From contig OZ176054.1 of the NCBI GenBank assembly GCA_964247055.1, forward strand, positions 5,332,001-5,396,000: a DNA stretch of 64,000 nt. The letters are read 5' to 3'. Below, one piece after another: positions 7,901 through 58,200 of the stretch; positions within the stretch are counted from its first letter, which is position 1, and each line of letters starts with the position of its first letter. The notes beneath the pieces are model-generated. The model saw only the letters and a list, made by a program, of their open reading frames with translations. It ran no database searches and was not told the origin of the DNA. The DNA comes from Paragordius varius. Lineage: Eukaryota; Animalia; Nematomorpha. The position numbers and the translations under genes were made by a program.

Positions 7901-10900
7901 TCTATTTTAAATTTATATAGTGCTCAATATGCAAAAAAAATTTTATATAAATAAATTTATTATCTATTTAAAAGAATCATTTTTAAAAATAATATATTTT
8001 AATAACTAGTAATAAATAAAATTGTTTGAAATCGTGGGCTTGTATATTCACCTCATTTAAGAATGATGCAAATGGCATACATTTTTCCATTATTTGAATT
8101 TATAAATATCGTTATATATAAATTAATATAACAAAGCAATCAAACAACATTTGTTTTTTTTTGATTCAATTAATATATTTTTTCTTTGTTTTATAGACAC
8201 TATTGATTTCACCTTGACAGAGTTGGGGGATATGTCCAATTTATTTCCATTGCATCCCAGATATGCCAAACTTATTTCCTCTACACTGATGGTTGTAAGC
8301 ACAGAAAATGACTCTAAAAAATGTTATACCTTAGCTTTAGCCTTGTCTTCAGCCTTAACAGTTCGCGAACTGTTTGAGAAATCACATAGAAATCTACAAT
8401 CCTCCTTGATTGATTGCAAAAATAATAGTGTGGATGAAGAAATACAATGTTTGGGTGATGTTATGACCCTATTTAAAGCAATTGGAGCATTGGATGTTTT
8501 TTGTGAGACTTTCATTTTTTGATAGATAATAATACTTTGTTACTTGTAATGTAAATATATTTTTCGGGGCTTTTTTGTTTAAAATCAATAATTTTTGCTC
8601 AAAACAGTCTCTACTGTAGAAAAATCTAAAATTATGATTATAATGTGTGTGGGAAACCAGTTATTAGTTAATTCTAGGATAATATGTGATATATATATAC
8701 TCTAAGAACCCATTCATTTTTGACTATTGTTAAAATTAATGCTATTTTAATTTACGCAAAATTTTTTATCATGGTAATTTTCGCCATTTATAATGTGATA
8801 TCCTCCAAATAGTTTACATTGAAAACATTAATAATTTTAATCGCCACTCATACCTCAAATTGACCCATAAAAAATTATTATCAACCAACAATTATAATAA
8901 AAAATATTTTTAAATTTACCATTTACGAGAACTGAAACTATTAAAATATAATTTATTGGAAATTGAGTACATTTTGTAACTAACTGCATTGTGGTTGTAC
9001 AGATGTATTTATATATTTTAGAAAGGATAATTGGCTATTAACTAAATTAAAATACTATTTGTATTAAATACAATGTCATGAAGTTCATATAAATTATCCA
9101 TATATATATTAATAATAAACTTAAGATTATAAACTTGGCATTTGTTAAATTAGAATACTATTTGTATTAAATACAATGTTAATGAAGTGTACATATAAAT
9201 TTTCCATATAAATAATAATAATTTAACCTAATGTTATAAACAATTAACAATATCTTTCTCCTATAGTAAAGCGATCTAGGGGTTTTCGCTGGCGTTGTGG
9301 ATATCTAGGTTTAGGTGTGTTTATACTCGTTGTCGGACTTGCGTTGTTATCATGTGTTGTTATGTCTATCATCGTTGATTGGATGTCATTGTTTGCGGCT
9401 TCAAGATCTTGTGGATTAGAGGTATCTTCTGAAATAATTGGTATTTCCGGTATTGGCGTGGTTGTTCTCGGACTCTCCATTCCTTGTAAATCAGCGTGTT
9501 TTATAAAGGACTCTGCCGGTTTCATCCTTTACCATATATGAGAATAAACCCTTGCGTTCTAATACTTTCCCTGCTTTCCATCCTTTTTCTATTTCATTCT
9601 TTATAAAAACCGTCTGCATTGGAAAGAATTGGCGAGTCGGTTCTATTTCATTAACGATAAACTCAGTTGTTTGCGAATTGAGCCATGACATTGGACCATT
9701 TGAGTGTCTTTTCAGAAAGACCTTCGATGGGTTATTTATAATTGCTTTGTGTGTGCGATAGCCATATAATATTGTGTTCATTGCCTCGTGTGCATGCATT
9801 GTCTGAGTCTTGGTAGCTCTATATCGAAATAAGGTTGCAATATATCTGTCAACCAATCTATTGGACTTGGGATGATATGGACCTAAAATATGTTTTATAT
9901 TAAGATTATGTAAGGTACTTCTGAATTCATGGGATGTAAAATATGGTTTATTATCGGTAACCATCTGTCTCGGGAAATCAAATCTCGCCATATGTTTTTC
10001 TATGCAATTCCATATTTGTTGTGATGTTATTGATTTAAGTAGATCAACCTCAACCCATCTGCAAACACTATCAATCGCGACTAACCAAAAATAACCGTCT
10101 ATGGGTCCGGCTATGTCGATGTGAATTCTCTCCCACAACGCGGTGTTGAAATCCTATTTCTACATTTTGATTTCCTTTATATTTGGCTTGTTTTTTTGAC
10201 ACCGTTCACATGCTTCTACAAAATTTTCTTAATCTCTTTCTAAATTTGGCCAATATATGGATTGTCTTGCTTGTTGTTTCATCGATTGCACTCCGTTATG
10301 TCCAGTATGTAAAATTTCGTTACGTCCCGCTGCAAGGATGTGGGTATTAGTAATCTTTCATTTACAAATGAAAATTATAGTATAATTGAATTTCATTTTT
10401 TACTTTAAGGTTCTTTAATATTTGGATCACTCCAATCATTTGTCCTTATTGCTGATTTAAGTTTGTTTGACTGGATCTAACATTATCTCATTTTCCACTC
10501 ACTCTTTACTTAGCTTAAATTTATTGATAGATAAAATACCGTCTGTGATGCATTATCATCTTCATTTCGCACATCCATGGTATTATCATTATTTAGGAAT
10601 CTGTATAGAGCGTCCGCTAAATTGTTTTGCCCGTTCTTATATTCGATTTCATAATCTCCCGATGTTTTATAGATCCATCTAAGTAGTTTAGTATTATTAA
10701 TATTTTGTAAGTTTCGAGACCAAATAACCCGATTAGTGGTTTGTGGTCGGTTATAAATTTAAATTTTCTGCCATATATTTTTGGCTTAGACTTTTCTATA
10801 GCAAACGTGACAGCTTTTGTTTTTGTCTCTGTTGTTGAATAATTGGTTTCGGCATCGGTGCATTTGCGTGAGGCGTATGATATGGGACGCTTTCCTTCCG

Positions 10901-12792
10901 GGGTAATATGAAGTAAAATCGCTCCAAATCCTTTGTTTGATGCATCTGTTTCTATTAGTATCGGCCAATTTGCGTTATGCACTAATGTATTGTAATTTAT
11001 CATTAGTTGTTTTGCTGATAGGAACTCCTCTTCTTCAATCTCGGTCCAGGCCCATGTTCTAGTTGAACCTGTGTTTCTGTGAAGGTTGCATATCGCTTTA
11101 TGGAGATTTAGCAGTCCTAAAAATGACCTCAGTTCTGTCTTATTGGTGGGTCTCGGACACTTGATCAAAGCTTGAATTTCGTTATTGGTGGGACAAATTC
11201 CATTCTTTGAAATTTCAAATCCCATGTAATTGACAGATGAAGCGGCAAGTTGCAATTTGTCACTTCTCAGTTGATTTTCCTTCGAGATTTTCCTGAGTCC
11301 TGCAGGAATAAGTTTTTTAATATTTAATCATTTGGACTAATGTTTTTAGCTATTAAAATACAATTCACTTGCTTTAATATTGTTTAAAATCAGTGTTTGG
11401 ATCGTATTCGTTAATGATGATTTTGGAAATTTCATTTTCCAATCCTGGTCACGGCACCAATGAAATAATTAAAAGATAAATAAAATATATAATTAATTCA
11501 GAAGAAATTACCTCTAACCTATAAGATTCGCAAAAATGACGTACAATCAACGACAGTAGACATAACAACACATGATAACAACGCAAGTTCGACAACGATT
11601 ATCGAACACACCTAAACCCAGATATCCACGACGCTAGCAAAAACACCCGGATCGCTTTACTATAGGGCGAAGATAATATTAAATGTTTATAACCTTAAGT
11701 TAAATTATTTATTTATATGGATAATTTATATGAACTTCATTTATATTTTTGCCAACTTTTAATTATTTCATTATAATAATAATTTAACTTAAGTTTATAA
11801 ACAATTTTTGCAAAAATTTAACTTTATAAAATTAAATTTAATTTTGACAAAAGTATTAATGAACGTGATGGTTAAAAAACCGACCACTCAAATGTTGCCA
11901 AAATAAACTAAATCCAAGTTTATCAAGAAAATGTTATTCTATTTAAAACGGGCTCTAAGATAAACTTAAAGTTATTAAGGATTAATTATGTGTTTATTTT
12001 TAAACATATTATGGGTTTGATTTTTGATTACTAATATTTATAGCTGATATTATATTTACAGCAGAAAAAAGTGAAGGGAAAGAACCGCGCAAACGAAAAT
12101 ATTTCTGCAAAAAATTAAATATAAACTCTAAATCATTGAATGAATTTTATCTCCATAGAAAACATATTCATTCCATAGCCAATCGTATCGATAATACCAT
12201 CAATGGTTCAATATTTTATCAATTATTATAAATAGGCTTTGTGATAACAAATATATGTTATTGATTCTTTTTTTCAATTGATAACGTTGTTTTATCGAAA
12301 TATTTTTACAGTTAGTAATTGAAAAGTTTTTTTAATGTTCAATATATTCTTTAATAATAAAATGGGACTTTATTATATAAACATAAACAAATTTAAATAT
12401 AGGTATTAACCGTTTAAATATGATCAACCTATTTTATATTTAGGATGTTAGTTATGTGTAAATATGTATCTTTTTTTAAAAAAAATTATCATTTGCATAT
12501 TTTGATTACTAACCTTTGAATTGTTAATACATGGTTTTTGATAAAATTTAACTTAAATTTTTTTGAACAGAATATAAGCTTACGAGGATACCTCAACCTA
12601 TTCAATTACACGAATTTAGAAAGCTCTTATGCGCAAGTGCTGGATTTAACATTGCGAAAAGAATGTCCCTCACAGAGCAACAAATTAAAGCTTTATCTCA
12701 TGTCAAACCAAAAATTAATCGTATAAAATTTTCATAGAAGCTTATTTTTATTAAATAGTAACTAATATTAATTTAGAAAAATATTTCACTAA

Positions 12793-51989: not shown

Positions 51990-52165
51990 TAAAAAATGCA
52001 TACAATGGTTCTTTATTTCTCACTATAGTAAAAACACAGGAGTGTATGGAAAAAAAGAAATGAAATAATTGTTTTTTCAACATTTTGCTGTTTTTTCCAT
52101 ACACTTCTCTGTTCAAATTGTCCTACTATAGTGTGAAATAAGCAACCATTAAAATGCATTTTTAA
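51990..52165. mobile_element. Short palindromic MITE
   Basis: aaaatgcat..ttatttctcactatagta..gagtgtatggaaaaaa is mirrored by ttttttccatacacttc..tactatagtgtgaaataag..atgcatttt. Confidence 0.7.
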
Positions 52166-52759
52166 ATCTGTCAAGTGTGCCCTCCACCACACTTGAAAAA
52201 TCTTTAAGTATACTTGATCATATGAGTTTTTATCACCTCCAAATCAAGTTTTCTTGCTTGACCTAAGGCCATTGTTAAAAATTTTTATCACAGGAAAAAC
52301 CATAACTTGAAAAACTTGCAAGCCAGGTCAAAAAAATTTTGTCACCACAACCATAGTTATGCTTTTTAAATAGAATGTTTTGTCAAAAAACTTAAAATCA
52401 ATCATCTACCTAAAAATTTATTTTTACATAATATGAAAATTTTTCGATTTCAAATCGTAACGATAAATCTCACTATGGCTTTTTTAAAAAGACCACAAGG
52501 GTCAACACCTATACCAGTGGCACACGTGGCCCACGGGCTATGTGCGGCCCAAATAGGTCTACGTTATTCACTTAATTTTTATAAACTCATTTAAGGTATG
52601 GATATGTATGTATTTTTCAAACAGATATGCAGTATTTGTTTGTCGGTATTATATGATGCACGGCTCTTGAGGCGATAAAAATATTTTATTTGGTCTCTGT
52701 TAATCTCCTATTACAGTTTAGAGTCTCTTTTTTCCCTATCCGGACTTATAAGGTTTTAT

Positions 52760-52857: not shown

Positions 52858-53779
52858 TTCATATATATATATATATATATATTGTGAACTTTTAAATAAT
52901 ATTTTCAAAGCATTGAACTTTCATCCAAAATATTATTTAACCTAATGGGCGCTAATATTGCATTTCAATATGGATCAATTAGCAGAGAATTGTAAAAATA
53001 TTTTTGATAAATGACTCCTAACGCTCAAAACCGAAAGCATCATATACTTTATCTATCAAATTTTATCAAGATCTTTTGTGCGCACTGTATACATATTTAG
53101 GTGCATTTTTTCCAAATATTAATGTTTTCAATTAGACAAATATATTATTTAGACACCTCTATAAAGTTATGAAATAGGCCATTTTTATATATATTGTTAT
53201 AATGGGATCCATAGTGATTGATCGCTTTAGGTTACATAGTTTAAATCGGCTTCTATCATAAAAAGGAATTTTATTATAATATGTTAAATATTTATAATTT
53301 TCAATCAAATTTAAATTCTTGCAAAAAAGAGGAGTCTTATGAGTGTGATATCAAATTGTAATAGTTTTTATATAAATGCACAAGTTTGAATTTACATAAA
53401 CATGGATCATTATAAATACAACAATCAAAATATAACATAGTTTACAAATCTTTTAAAATATTTTACCTACTAAACATCTTGTCATCATCAAAATGATAAA
53501 TATACTATTTTATGTTCGATGTGTCTTTGGGAAAAAAGTCGGGTGTAAGAAGGAGAAGGAAACGCCACATGAAAGTAAATAATAATTAAATGATTCCGAA
53601 AAAAATGACTTTTAATATTTTTTTTATATGGCATAAAACCCCAGAAAGTTAATGAAGAAAAAACTTTAATTTCAATGAATAAAATATTAAAAACTTTAAT
53701 TTCAATGAATAAAATATTAATAATAATATACTTAAAACTTTTATTTTATAAAGTAAAATAATTAAAGTTCTAAATGTGT

Positions 53780-55913
53780 TTAAAGAAACTGCCCGCATAT
53801 AGGGTTTTTTGAATTGTTTTCCATTATTTTATCAAGGGTAATCTGACTTTCACCTCTGTTTTCTTTTGTAAGACTATATTTACCGGTTTTAGACTTCAGC
53901 TTGGGCCAATGTAGGATTGGTTTACTCCGTAAAATTGTGGGTCTAATCATTGTTTCCGAAACAACTTCTTCATGATGGATTAAACTCACTTTTTTAAAGA
54001 CTACATTTAAATTGTTTTCCATTATTCAATCAAGGGTAATCTGACTTTCACCTCTGTTTTCTTTTGTAAGACTATATTTACCGGTTTTAGACTTCAGCTT
54101 CGGCCAATGTAGGATTGATTTAGTCCGTATGATTGTGGGTCTAATCATTGTTTCCGAATCAACATCATCATGATGGATTAAAATCACTTTTTTTAGGACT
54201 ACATTTGAATAGTTTTTCATTATTTTATCAAGGGTAATCTGACTTTCACCTCTGTTTTCTTTGTAAGCTATATTTACCGGTTTTAGACTTCAGTTTCGGC
54301 CAATGTAGGATTGGTTTTGTCTGTATGATTGTGGGTCTAATCATTGTTTCCGAATCAACTTCTATGGATTAAACTCACTTTTTTAAGGACTACATTTGAA
54401 TTGTTTTCCATTATTCCATCAAGGGTTATTTAACTTTGACCTCTTGCTTTTGTAAGACTATATTTACCGGTTTTAGACTTCAGTTTCGGCCAATGTAGGA
54501 TTGATTTAGTCCGTATGATTGTGGGTCTAATCATTGTTTCCGAATCAACATCATCATGATGGATTAAAATCACTTTTTTTAGGAGTACATTTGAATAGTT
54601 TTTCATTATTCCATCAAGGGTAATCTGACTTTCACCTCTGTTTTCTTTGTAAGCTATATTTACCGGTTTTAGACTTCAGTTTCGGCCAATTTGGTTTTGT
54701 CTGTATGATTGTGGGTCTAATCATTGTTTCCGAATCAACTTCTATGGATTAAACTCACTTTTTTAAGGACTACATTTGAATTGTTTTCCATTATTCCATC
54801 AAGGGTTAATTAACTTTGACCTCTTGCTTTTGCAAGACTATATTTACCGGTTTTAGACTTCAGTTTCGGCCAATGTAGTATTGATTTAGTCCGTATGATT
54901 GTGGGTCTAAAAAATCACTTTTTTAAGGACTACATTTGAATCGTTTTCCATTATTCCATAAGAGTAATCTGACTTTCGCCTCTGTTTTCTTTTGTAAGAC
55001 TATATTTATCGGTTTTAGACTTCAGTTTGGGCCAATGTAGGATTGGTTTACTCCGTAAAATTGTGGGTCTAATCATTGTTTCCGAAACAACTTCTTCATG
55101 ATGGACTAAACTCACTTTTTTTAAGACTACATTTAAATTGTTTTCCATTATTCAATCAAGGGGTAATCTGACTTTCACCTCTGTTTTCTTTTGTAAGCTA
55201 TATTTACCGGTTTTAGACTTCAGTTTCGGCCAATGTAGGATTGGTTTTGCCCGTATGATTGTGGGTCTAATCATTGTTTCCGAATCAACTTCTATGGATT
55301 AAACTCACTTTTTTAAGGACTACATTTGAATTGTTTTCCATTATTCCATCAAGGGTTATTTAACTTTGACCTCTTGCTTTTGTAAGACTATATTTACCGG
55401 TTTTAGACTTCAGTTTCGGCCAATGTAGGATTGGTTTTGTCTGTATGATTGTGGGTCTAATCATTGTTTCCGAATCAACTTCTTCATGATGGATTAAACT
55501 CACTTTTTTAAGGACTACATTTGAATCGTTTTCCATTATTTTATCAAGGGTAATCTGACTTTCACCTCTGTTTTCTTTTGTAAGACTATATTTACCGGTT
55601 TTAGACTTCAGTTTGGGCCAATGTAGGATTGGTTTACTCCGTAAAATTGTGGGTCTAATCATTGTTTCCGAAACAACTTCTTCATGATGGATTAAACTCA
55701 CTTTTTTAAAGACTACATTTAAATTGTTTTCCATTATTCAATCAAGGGTAATCTGACTTTCACCTCTGTTTTCTTTTGTAAGACTATATTTACCGGTTTT
55801 AGACTTCAGCTTCGGCCAATGTAGGATTGGTTTAATCCGTAAAATTGTGGGTCTGATCATTGTTTCCGAATCAACTTCTTCATGATGGATTAAACTCACT
55901 TTTTTAAGGACTA
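53780..55913 (-). repeat. Tandem array of ~11 copies of a 195/198-bp unit with coding potential (left arm, minus orientation)
   Basis: The unit translates MENNSNVVLKKVSLIHHEEVDSETMIRPTIIRTKPILHWPKLKSKTGKYSLTKENRGESQITLDGI. Spacings are ~160-198 bp with recurring small deletions. The last unit reads into a unique NNSKNPICGQFL*. Confidence 0.95.
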
Positions 55914-55987
55914 CTCATAAACTATAATTTAGATTGCCAATATGAGAAAAAGGGTGGTGATTCGTTTGCTAATCTTCCACTAGAAAC

Positions 55988-57046
55988 GAAAACAATTCAA
56001 ATGTAATCCTTAAAAAAGTGAGTTAAATCCATCATGAAGAAGTTGATTCGGAAACAATGATTAGACCCACAATTTTACGGATTAAACTAATCCTACATTG
56101 GCCGAAACCGAAGTCTAAAACCGGTAAATATAGTCTTACAAAAGCAACCAGAGGTAAAAGTCAGATTACCCTTGATGGAATAATGGAAAACAATTCAAAT
56201 GTAGTCCTTAATAAAGTGGGTTTAATCCATCAAGAAGAAGGTGATTCGGAAACAATGATTAGACCCACAATCATACGGACTAATTCAATCTACATTGCCG
56301 GAACTGAAGTCTAAAACCGGTAAATACAGTCTTACAAAAGCAAGAGGTCAAAGTCAGATAACCCTTGATGGAATAATGGAAAACAATTCAAATGTAGTCC
56401 TTAAAAAAGTGAGTTTAATCCATCATGAAGAAGTTGATTCGGAAACAATGATTAGACCCACAATTTTACGGACTAAACCAATCCTACATTGGCCGAAACT
56501 GAAGTCTAAAACCGGTAAATATAGTCTTACAAAAGAAAGAGGTCAAAGTCAGATAACCCTTGATGGAATAATGGAAATCAATTCAAATGTAGTCCTTAAA
56601 AAAGTGAGTTTAATTTATCATGAAGAAGTTGATTTGGAAACATTGATTAGACCCACAATCATACGGACTAAACCAATCCTACATTGGCCGGAACTGAAGT
56701 TTAAAACCGGTAAATATAGTCTTACAAAAGAAAGAGGTCAAAGTCAGATAACCCTTGATGGAATAATGGAAAACGATTCAAATGTAGTCCTTAAAAAGTG
56801 AGTTTAATCCATCATGAAGAAGTTGATTCGGAAACAATGATTAGACCCACAATCATACGGACTAAATCAATCCTACATTGGCCGGAACTGAAGTCTAAAA
56901 CCGGTAAATATAGTCTTAAAAAAGAGAACAGAGGTGATAGTCAGATTACCCTTGATGGAATGTTATTATCATCTGTTGTTTCACATAAATTAGTCATTTC
57001 GATGGCTACGAATTTCATAGCGAAATTTGGTGCTAAATTTATTTAA
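55988..57046 (+). repeat. Tandem array of ~5 copies of the same unit (right arm, plus orientation), ORF continuing into unique sequence
   Basis: Unit starts at ~55990, 56183, 56376, 56571 and 56766. The last unit runs into MLLSSVVSHKLVISMATNFIAKFGAKFI* (57046). Confidence 0.95.
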
Positions 57047-57967
57047 AATATGCACGGGTATATAATTTAATTTTTGTTTACTTACAGATCCATTCTGGTA
57101 TCGTTTCTAATATTTATAATTAAATTTATTGCAAACTCAAAAAGTCGAATAAAAATTTTCTTCTAAAAATGATTAAAAATCATAAATCAAAATCATTGAT
57201 AATCCATATTATGGGTTAATCACACGAGGCGTGCTTTTTTATTAACACTGACAAATTCAAATTATAAAATGCCATTTATTAACGAGCATAAAAATATAAT
57301 ATATCTTAATACGATTGTTTTAATGACAACGAAAATAGCACGGGGTACACCCCTTTGTACAATTGGTGAACCAATTGTCAGAGTACCGTGAGCTATATAA
57401 GTATTGGGAAAAACCTTTTAAAACTTTTTCTAATAAAATTGATTGGAAATGTTTGTATATATATTTGTATGTAAATAAAATATTATTATGATTAATTTTT
57501 AACTGTAAGTTAGTGTTTAAATTATCTTATCAGAAAAAAAGGAATTAAAAAAAAATACCGTACATAACCTGCGCTTTGGAAAGGACATTATTGTTTGATT
57601 TTTGGAACAGAGGTTTGATATTAATAGAGTTGTTGATAAGCGACAATAGTTTTAATAAAATAAAACGTTAACGACAAAAAAATAATTTAACCGAGCAGAC
57701 GATAACCCAAATAAAATTTATAAGAATATATGGAAGATTATTAAATAAATAATTTAGTATAAAAATGTACTTATCTTTGATTTTCCTGTGGCATAGGTAC
57801 TGTTCCCCTAAATAACTGAAGTTTTACGGGTGACTCAACTTTTATAATAAAAGGATTCATTTACGAGTACCGTAAAACTTCATCAGGGTAATAAGCCTCT
57901 TTAGATTGCACTTTTTACAAATGAAGAATCATCCATATTCCTAAAGTATAAATATGTAAAATGTATT

Positions 57968-58050
57968 TGATGGCTTTAGTGTGTTCTTCTCATATTCAAA
58001 AGGCAGACCGATGGCTTTGGTGAGTTCTTCACATATTCAAAAGGCAGACG
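57968..58050. repeat. 41-bp tandem duplication just upstream of SAMHD1
   Basis: gatggctttRgtgWgttcttcWcatattcaaaaggcagac occurs twice. Confidence 0.8.
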
Positions 58051-58200
58051 ATTTCGACCGAATCGCGAAAAGTCCTACGATTGTTTTATATTAAAATATA
58101 ACTTATGCGCACATGTGGTTTTTAATGTTTGGAAACGAATGTTTTCTCATCCAGATGTTTTGTAACGACAAACCGATTTTAAATTTTAGTGACAATCGGG

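Follow-up and report, generated by a model that had tools for sequence, protein, structure and literature searches.

We analyse here a window, that is the whole stretch of 64,000 nucleotides of Paragordius varius DNA, in which two arrays of one repeat unit face away from each other across a short spacer. On the whole, the locus is an ordinary product of repeat instability and not a new pair of protein genes, and the family to which it belongs is species-specific, low-copy, non-coding tandem-repeat DNA with a monomer of 195/198 bp. As judged from alignment with its sister loci, the minus-strand arm is a secondary inverted copy, cleanly inserted in the upstream flank (flank A) 73 nt upstream of the start of the array. 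We consider it probable that a non-coding array received this inverted insertion, by fold-back copying or by re-insertion of a circle, and was reshaped afterwards by unequal crossing-over.

Layout of the arrays and of their sister loci

The features of the locus are collected in Table 1. Tandem Repeats Finder places arrays of period 195/198 at 53808-54910, 54911-55914 and 55988-56961 and also calls higher-order periods of 386/388 bp in them, and BLAST with one unit gives about 11.5 units on the minus strand and about 5 on the plus strand. This confirms the sequence-only reading, which had counted about 11 minus-strand and about 5 plus-strand copies of a 195/198-bp unit in divergent orientation. 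The spacer that it described between the arms is present as well, with its size and position corrected from about 75 bp at 55914-55987 to 73 nt at 55915-55987. A palindrome of 3 kb able to form dsRNA had also been proposed; what is found is an imperfect palindrome of about 1 kb, a potential hairpin in a read-through RNA, and an inverted-repeat search of the window returns arms of up to 303 nt with 90-96% complementarity.

Table 1. Coordinates of the array locus and its surroundings in the window (unit counts by BLAST with one unit, local duplications by Tandem Repeats Finder)
Feature	Position	Strand	Description
Upstream flank (flank A)	52963..53807	+	Homologous to the sequence 5' of the arrays at L011, L014, L015 and L012; same sense as the plus arm
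Local tandem duplications in flank A	53659..53765		30/44 nt
Minus arm	53808..55914	-	10 full and 2 partial units; M01 adjoins the spacer, M12 is farthest from it
Spacer	55915..55987	+	73 nt; end of flank A in native orientation, directly abutting the plus array at its native start
Plus arm	55988..56961	+	4 full and 2 partial units; begins at unit position 37, ends at about 33
Imperfect dyad within the unit, example in P03	56395..56475	+	Unit positions 53-78 pair with 108-133; 29-nt loop
Right flank	56962..57321		Single-copy in the genome
Unrelated interspersed repeat	57322..58075		About 700 bp, at least 40 copies at 85-90% identity; separate from the arrays

In the genome, the unit has 26-30 matches at about eight loci on contigs C4 and C5, which have common flanks, A on the upstream and B on the downstream side; no array exceeds 2.1 kb, and the total is roughly 45-50 units. 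At L011, L014 and L015 the array runs one way only, with flank A before it and flank B after it. Inverted blocks of the family are found at L012, L013 and L016 too, making four of the about eight loci together with the window, where flank B is missing. Because some 1 kb of unique flank on either side is common to the arrays, it is whole segments that were duplicated, not monomers that spread alone. At its outer edges the shared segment gives way to short interspersed repeats of unrelated kinds. The flanks themselves are low-copy, and no Helitron end signals (5' TC, 3' hairpin-CTRR) stand out at the points where the sister loci cease to match. A 3' transduction by the LINE-tail-like short repeat beside flank A was considered; the copies have no clear ends or tails.

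The units of the minus arm show several variants, which recur at 97-99% identity: type A (M02, M05, M11), type B (M08, M10) and type C (M04, M07, M09). All type C units have the same -5 and -1 deletions and a TAA, so that a unit with frameshifts and a stop has been amplified three times. Another variant is common to M01 and P01, the two units adjoining the spacer, and is absent from every other unit. The sequence-only reading had left a choice between a divergent gene pair and a satellite born from an exon, and the satellite half of this choice, though not necessarily the birth from an exon, is borne out by the head-to-tail monomers, the higher-order periods and the block-amplified variants. 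As to the name, the family lacks the high copy number and the long arrays of satellites and is better called low-copy minisatellite-like. It resembles the Cast satellites of Tribolium (PMC11610590) in having head-to-tail monomers of about 200 bp, short dispersed arrays, higher-order periods and block-amplified variants, defective ones included, and differs from them in its very low copy number and in the unique flanks of about 1 kb common to the arrays. Transposable elements or extrachromosomal circles have been put forward as the means by which the Cast satellites spread (PMC11610590).

The unit also holds the imperfect dyad of Table 1, which appears in both the minimum-free-energy and the centroid folds; with a z-score of -0.88 for the whole unit, the fold is not unusual. 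Across 21 units from 8 loci, 82% of cells preserve the pairing of the dyad, a share that drops to 27-45% once the partner is shifted along the sequence; its covariation is borderline, and the dyad is kept in all families. Rfam and ARAGORN detect no RNA family or tRNA in the window.

Origin of the inverted arm

Flank A is present to either side of the minus arm and of no other part, which is why that arm alone is taken as the insertion. In a sensitive alignment, flank A is colinear with the sister loci right up to 53807. On the other side of the arm, the spacer is 83-87% identical to the 73-87 nt immediately 5' of the arrays at L011, L014 and L015, and the plus arm starts at the same unit position as the arrays of these three loci. 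The interruption of flank A is accompanied by a loss of at most 4 nt, by 2-3 nt of microhomology per junction and by no target-site duplication. With unit position about 52 at 55914 and about 50 at 53808, the insert amounts to a whole number of units, for which the chance is about 2%. A BLAST-based reading, by which flank A had lost 75 nt and gained filler in their place, is rejected, as the "filler" proves to be diverged flank A in the sensitive alignment (L012, L014, L015). Over their full length, the two arms match best in the mirror register (91.2% against 85.5-90.1% for others), and the loop between the mirror arms is 88 nt, made up of the 73-nt end of flank A and the first 15 nt of the array. 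At 55914/55915 there is an inverted microhomology of 2 nt (AC/GT) with 56003-56004, a length that is also frequent by chance and is the commonest class in fold-back inverted duplications (PMC3907307).

The following course of events is the most likely in view of these observations. The native arrangement is flank A followed by the plus array, with the 73-nt spacer belonging to this native part. A break in flank A would have been mended by copying from the adjacent array, through fold-back or template switching, probably primed on the 2 nt of microhomology, after which the copied strand would have been joined to the other broken end. In a close variant, a circle of whole units would have been excised from the array and then re-inserted. 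The minus arm would later have grown by unequal crossing-over into higher-order repeats, including the units with frameshifts and stops.

In known fold-back inverted duplications, the copies are set apart by a short single-copy spacer, and the inverted microhomology measures 2-8 bp (PMC3907307); breaks are described as sites of templated inverted insertions (PMC11724301), and satellites are proposed to spread via extrachromosomal circles (PMC11610590). The locus is like the former two systems in being a local copy, with a short single-copy segment in native orientation between the inverted and the direct units; the 2 nt of inverted microhomology may be a further likeness. It differs from them in being 2 kb long, interstitial and without terminal deletion, the human cases measuring kilobases to megabases and the yeast ones 5-34 bp (PMC3907307; PMC11724301). 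In addition, the fold-back model does not predict a copy made of whole repeat units, as is the case here. The data do not discriminate between the two routes: fold-back copying leaves the whole-unit length unexplained, and the circle leaves unexplained a landing only 73 nt from the source.

Two other origins of the palindromic layout have to be weighed. Foldback (FB-type) transposons have terminal inverted repeats made of tandem sub-repeats, and two inverted tandem-repeat blocks around a short loop are just what the locus offers, with such blocks recurring at L012, L013 and L016. That the head-to-head arrays and their short central loop were inserted as one such element is nevertheless highly improbable. 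The two outer ends differ, the left one lying at unit position 50 and the right one at 33, neither a direct repeat nor a target-site duplication is present in the flanks, only the minus arm is an insertion in flank A, the arrays at L011, L014 and L015 have a single orientation, the sisters are not palindromic as a rule, and the family is low-copy. Searches of the genome detect no further copies with the same two outer ends and target-site duplications. An error of assembly, namely a chimeric long read of the fold-back kind or two arrays wrongly joined, would be suggested by the inverted repeats around a short spacer, which are typical of chimeric reads; we give it almost no credence. The arms differ by about 9% and in their unit variants and copy numbers (11.5 against 5 units), which argues against a fold-back chimera, and the two junctions fall within flank sequence that keeps the order of the sister loci, with inverted blocks at three other loci.

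Coding capacity of the unit

The consensus unit is stop-free in one frame and its 195/198 length variant is an in-frame 3-nt indel, both as noticed at the outset. This does not extend to the individual units, as the frame changes many times along both arms and is interrupted by TGA/TAA stops. Most indels have lengths not divisible by 3 (-5, -1, -35, +1 and several more -1), and the longest open stretch is 168 aa in the plus arm and 124 aa in the minus arm. Each arm had been credited with a unique C-terminus of its own; the arms do read out into their flanks, for merely 14-27 codons of read-through. A stop-free frame arises by chance in 6-11% of shuffles and in 12% of random 195-mers from the window, i.e. 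about 10%. Since at 27% GC about one of ten random units should be free of stops over 65 codons, such a unit is not evidence for a gene.

The tests of selection that were proposed along with the gene pair, an alignment of the units and dN/dS, give 0.5-1.0 against the closest sister arrays, L011 and L014 (0.85, 0.51 and 1.02, with codon-position counts of 6/8/7, 6/8/7 and 4/4/4), and frameshifts in both arms. Variants at codon positions 1/2/3 number 25/18/23 within the window, and those among close families number 11/13/12; neither the units of the window among themselves nor their comparison with the close sisters shows an excess at the third position. The divergent pair of repeat-protein genes is not supported on these grounds, with its frames broken, its disabled units re-amplified and a third-position excess missing in the window and its close sisters.

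The deep comparisons between families look different. The L012 family is 27% diverged, and its consensus is stop-free in the same frame as that of the window family, with a length difference that is in frame. Here the open frame has a dN/dS of 0.34-0.42, the remaining frames one of 0.55-1.4. The P values from neutral simulation are 0.03, 0.04 and 0.13, the third-position entropy excess has P = 0.0145, and a conservative minimum-change counting gives P = 0.06. A coding past may thus be weakly hinted at, in the deep comparisons alone, with P of about 0.015-0.13 depending on the test.

These deep results, together with the shared stop-free frame, are what recommends the reading in which the arrays are decayed copies of a lineage-specific protein repeat of 65/66 residues, coded once or still coded at L011. 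That locus has an uninterrupted frame of 474 aa (C5:7383674-7385098), whose tail of 70 codons is common to L014. We nevertheless consider this reading unlikely. The L011 frame owes its openness mainly to units that were copied recently and are nearly identical, the close families are without constraint, and 10-14% of neutral simulations also stay stop-free. Moreover, no parent gene for the unit is found elsewhere in the genome, and the flanks are as conserved across the sister loci as the "coding" part itself.

Comparisons with known proteins bear on the same question, and a missing homologue, the lack of a confident fold and a low protein-likeness score all count against a protein. Pfam returns only sub-threshold noise, both for three window ORFs at E up to 1 and for the 474-aa L011 ORF at E up to 0.01. 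A word search with the latter is without match, a profile of 14 units has no homologue among 1.84 billion representative proteins, and a PDB search is without match as well. In a language-model atlas the best score is 0.80 and the recognition 762, where known families usually reach 2300. AlphaFold2 yields a pLDDT of 59 and a pTM of 0.13 for one unit with a 14-row alignment, and a pLDDT of 39 for the L011 ORF alone; the 65-residue unit is predicted to be strand-rich, at low confidence. The remark that no known protein family is recognisable therefore stands, with Pfam, word search, profile search, PDB and atlas all blank. A resemblance to LKKT or PEVK repeats had also been suggested, and the K-rich VVLKKV motif and the K/S/T-rich composition of the unit do recall the LKKT motifs of WH2/thymosin and the PEVK repeats of titin. 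It is not upheld, as Pfam lists no such family for the three window ORFs at E up to 1 or for the 474-aa L011 ORF at E up to 0.01; unlike these proteins, the unit has 65 residues, a strand-rich prediction of low confidence and a frame that is not maintained.

The L011 frame also enters a reading in which the arrays form a hairpin-RNA locus. A read-through transcript would fold into an imperfect duplex of about 1 kb, and the resulting small RNAs would silence the sister arrays or the L011 frame. The two arms have 213 exact 21-mers in common, and either arm matches the L011 frame at about 30; the mirror register reaches 91% over 969 nt. Against these figures, the arms have drifted by about 9% and have unequal copy numbers, nothing points to selection for arm pairing, and the putative target bears no sign of being a gene, so that we regard a silencing role as very unlikely. 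In flies, selfish gene families have inverted-repeat suppressors, and such loci arise by inverted duplication of their targets. By analogy, the 474-aa frame might be a fast-evolving orphan repeat-protein gene and the head-to-head arrays of the window its derivative, a hairpin small-RNA suppressor. This we find hardly credible; if true, it would be a gene and suppressor pair like those of the flies in a little-studied animal phylum. Under the history of non-coding array and inverted insertion that we prefer, the window would make no protein, and the open frame of the consensus unit would be due to chance or at most be a relic.

What the locus means

As one more species-specific tandem repeat, with a palindromic layout that fits known routes of instability, the locus matters little. 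It does hold a caution for the reading of AT-rich DNA, as in a genome of 27% GC a stop-free unit of 65 codons is to be expected about once in ten at random. Beyond this, an inverted insertion of 2 kb made of whole repeat units, resolved to the base and lying 73 nt from its source array, bears on the origin of inverted satellite blocks.

Layout of the inverted arrays

The assembly comprises 110 Mb in 44 contigs with roughly 27% GC, and the window (C5:5332001-5396000) lies in a gene-poor, repeat-rich neighbourhood. Overall, the head-to-head inverted arrays described in the sequence-only reading are real. Tandem Repeats Finder detects two blocks with the unit period and, in addition, higher-order periods of 386/388 bp; the blocks are mutually inverted with 90-96% complementarity, and a single unit used as query matches the minus strand with 10 full and 2 partial copies and the plus strand with 4 full and 2 partial ones, in accordance with the earlier count of about 11 and about 5 copies. 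The unit consensus has one frame without stops and the two unit lengths arise from an in-frame 3-nt indel, both as first noticed. The spacer is short, as expected (~75 bp), but not unique, being 83-87% identical to the final stretch of flank A, the upstream flank shared by the family. A fold-back chimeric read, which would have made the inversion an assembly artefact, is rejected, since the arms are ~9% apart and differ in unit composition.

Coordinates of the arrays, their neighbours and features at sister loci of the family (window positions unless a locus is named; contigs of the same genome, G000)
Feature	Position	Strand	Remark
Degraded LTR retrotransposon	9491-11255	-	integrase-core and RT-RNase H domain ORFs
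~190-bp element	52159-52349		probably MITE or SINE
Remainder of flank A	52963-53807	+	same orientation as spacer
Minus arm	53808-55914	-	period 195/198; Tandem Repeats Finder
Spacer	55915-55987		73 nt
Plus arm	55988-56961	+	period 195/198; Tandem Repeats Finder
Interspersed repeat	57322-58075		~700 bp
Tandem duplication inside it	57969-58049		41 bp
Satellite	from 62710
474-aa open frame	L011:3674-5098 (C5:7383674-7385098)	-	six near-identical 198-bp units
Nested palindromes	L012:3900-6600 (C4:8967900-8970600)		older branch
Insertion in array	L014:4428-6500		2 kb
Satellite-like part of it	about L014:4852-5215		79-88% identical to satellite from 62710
~230-bp repeat	L014:7363-7599	-	adjoins flank A
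~230-bp repeat	L011:5833-5976	-	adjoins flank A

Frames and protein relatives of the unit

The window arms are not genes, and the divergently transcribed repeat-protein gene pair proposed earlier is not supported. When either arm is translated, the reading shifts among all three frames and is broken by TGA and TAA codons, with longest open stretches of 168 and 124 aa, and frameshifts are frequent, unit indels of -5, -1, -35 and +1 being more numerous than multiples of three. The minus arm is composed of repeatedly occurring unit types (numbered from the spacer outwards). Among them, type C (M04, M07, M09) was amplified three times even though it has lost 5 nt at one place and 1 nt at another and contains a TAA, and type A (M02, M05, M11) contains a TGA; the array expansion therefore postdates the frame loss. 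Distinct variants inside the window fall evenly on codon positions 1/2/3 (25/18/23). The dN/dS check suggested earlier gives 0.85 and 0.51 against the closest sister arrays, L011 and L014, and 1.02 between these two, with substitutions of 6/8/7, 6/8/7 and 4/4/4 by codon position. Actually, a stop-free frame is unremarkable for a 195-nt unit in the window: when units are shuffled, 6-11% have one by chance, and among random 195-mers of the window the share is 12%.

For the older family branches (L012, L013, L016 and L017, 65-75% identity), the L012 consensus likewise keeps the same frame without stops, with an in-frame 3-nt difference. Against older-branch consensus units, dN/dS in the open frame is 0.42, 0.34 and 0.37, versus 0.55-1.4 in the other two frames; when the observed substitution spectrum is simulated under neutrality, P is 0.03, 0.04 and 0.13, and 10-14% of the runs remain stop-free. 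Third-position column entropy is higher among eight family consensus sequences (P = 0.0145), and a conservative minimum-change count gives 30/32/43 by codon position on deep branches (P = 0.06) and 11/13/12 on shallow ones. The deep-branch tests (dN/dS, simulation, entropy, change count) hint weakly that the unit once coded, but they are mutually non-independent and none is strong. Judged from these alignments, a coding origin of the unit seems rather unlikely, and an origin from an exon is unproven.

As the first reading also held, no known protein family is recognised. Pfam yields sub-threshold noise alone, without WH2, thymosin or PEVK-type match, and the suggested likeness of the VVLKKV motif to LKKT or PEVK repeats is not borne out; WH2/PEVK repeats and a repeat-protein gene were both rejected as classes. 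A word search with the 474-aa L011 ORF finds no match, and a profile of 14 units taken from seven loci (alignment A1) has no match among 1.84 billion representative proteins and no credible one in the PDB. The language-model atlas returns a recognition score of 762, known families usually reaching 2300, and a top match of 0.80, which is chance level. AlphaFold2 predicts no secondary structure for one unit (pLDDT 59, pTM 0.13) and gives pLDDT 39 for the 474-aa ORF. In a six-frame search of its own genome, proposed earlier as a check, the unit peptide occurs at array loci only and therefore has no parent gene.

Concerning the L011 frame itself, it is uninterrupted, with 490 codons between stops, and its 70-codon tail is common to L014 (97.7% nucleotide identity, 3 amino acid changes); homologues were not found in these searches, and the predicted fold is of low confidence. 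That the window might be a hairpin-RNA locus directed at an orphan gene at L011 is highly improbable; the two arms have 213 exact 21-mers in common, and each shares about 30 with L011.

The minus arm within flank A

The plus arm starts at unit position 37, as do the arrays at all three of L011, L014 and L015. Sensitive alignment with L014, L015 and L012 shows the remainder of flank A to be colinear up to 53807. The minus arm is thus a clean insertion, this remainder and the spacer making up one interrupted, colinear flank A. The insertion removed no more than 4 nt, microhomology of 2-3 nt is present at each junction, and no target-site duplication was found there. Flank B, the family's downstream flank, is absent from this locus; the plus arm is followed on its right by 360 single-copy nucleotides and then by an unrelated interspersed repeat.

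The insert runs from unit position ~52 on the spacer side to ~50, a whole number of units. The mirror register is the best full-length register of the arms (91.2% over 969 nt vs 85.5-90.1%), the two units nearest the spacer have a private variant in common, and the mirror arms are separated by an 88-nt loop, made up of the spacer and the array's first 15 nt. We infer that the minus arm was probably made by fold-back or template-switch inverted duplication of the array, and that unequal exchange later enlarged it to 11.5 units. Fold-back inverted duplication leaves a native-orientation spacer and short inverted microhomology (PMC3907307); the window arms have a like anatomy at small scale, microhomology as short as 2 nt being also frequent by chance, and templated inverted insertion (PMC11724301) is a comparison case. 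On the fold-back route, however, a whole unit number is left to chance (~2%). It would be predicted if a circle of units had been excised from the array and re-inserted, satellite DNA circles having been described (PMC11610590), but landing 73 nt from the source is not expected of such a circle, and the two routes are not separable. A foldback transposon was rejected.

Each unit contains an imperfect dyad (positions 53-78 pair with 108-133), and its foot is where both breakpoints fall. The dyad is retained in 82% of cells in all family branches, versus 27-45% with the partner slid, and its covariation is borderline only; speculatively, stalling or breakage might occur there.

The satellite family and its sister loci

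A few neighbours deserve mention. The interspersed repeat at 57322-58075 has at least 40 copies on all large contigs (85-90% identity), and the very abundant ~190-bp element has 2355 first-look genome candidates (82-86% identity). The ~230-bp short interspersed repeat (at least 40 copies) has a fixed 5' end, and the motif that closes its open frame is similar to the C-terminal tail of LINE ORF2 proteins; the repeat may have arisen from a LINE tail as a SINE-like element. At L014, a 2-kb insertion interrupts the array.

On the whole, the satellite half of the earlier alternative is supported, and the window arrays behave as do euchromatic satellites or minisatellites that have higher-order repeat structure. 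The unit is confined to ~8 loci on contigs C5 and C4. At L011, L014 and L015 an array in single orientation lies between flank A (~0.9 kb) and flank B (1-1.5 kb), beside a 2.2-kb segment X in varying order; shared flanks and segment X therefore show duplication of whole ~6 kb segments, and from locus to locus flanks and arrays are similar to the same degree. L013 and L016 have head-to-head inverted blocks too, flank B seeming present on both outer sides of L016, and L012 (~70-75% identity) has at least four orientation switches, with nested inverted arms of up to 474 nt and 95% complementarity. Inverted blocks at these loci thus indicate a family prone to such events.
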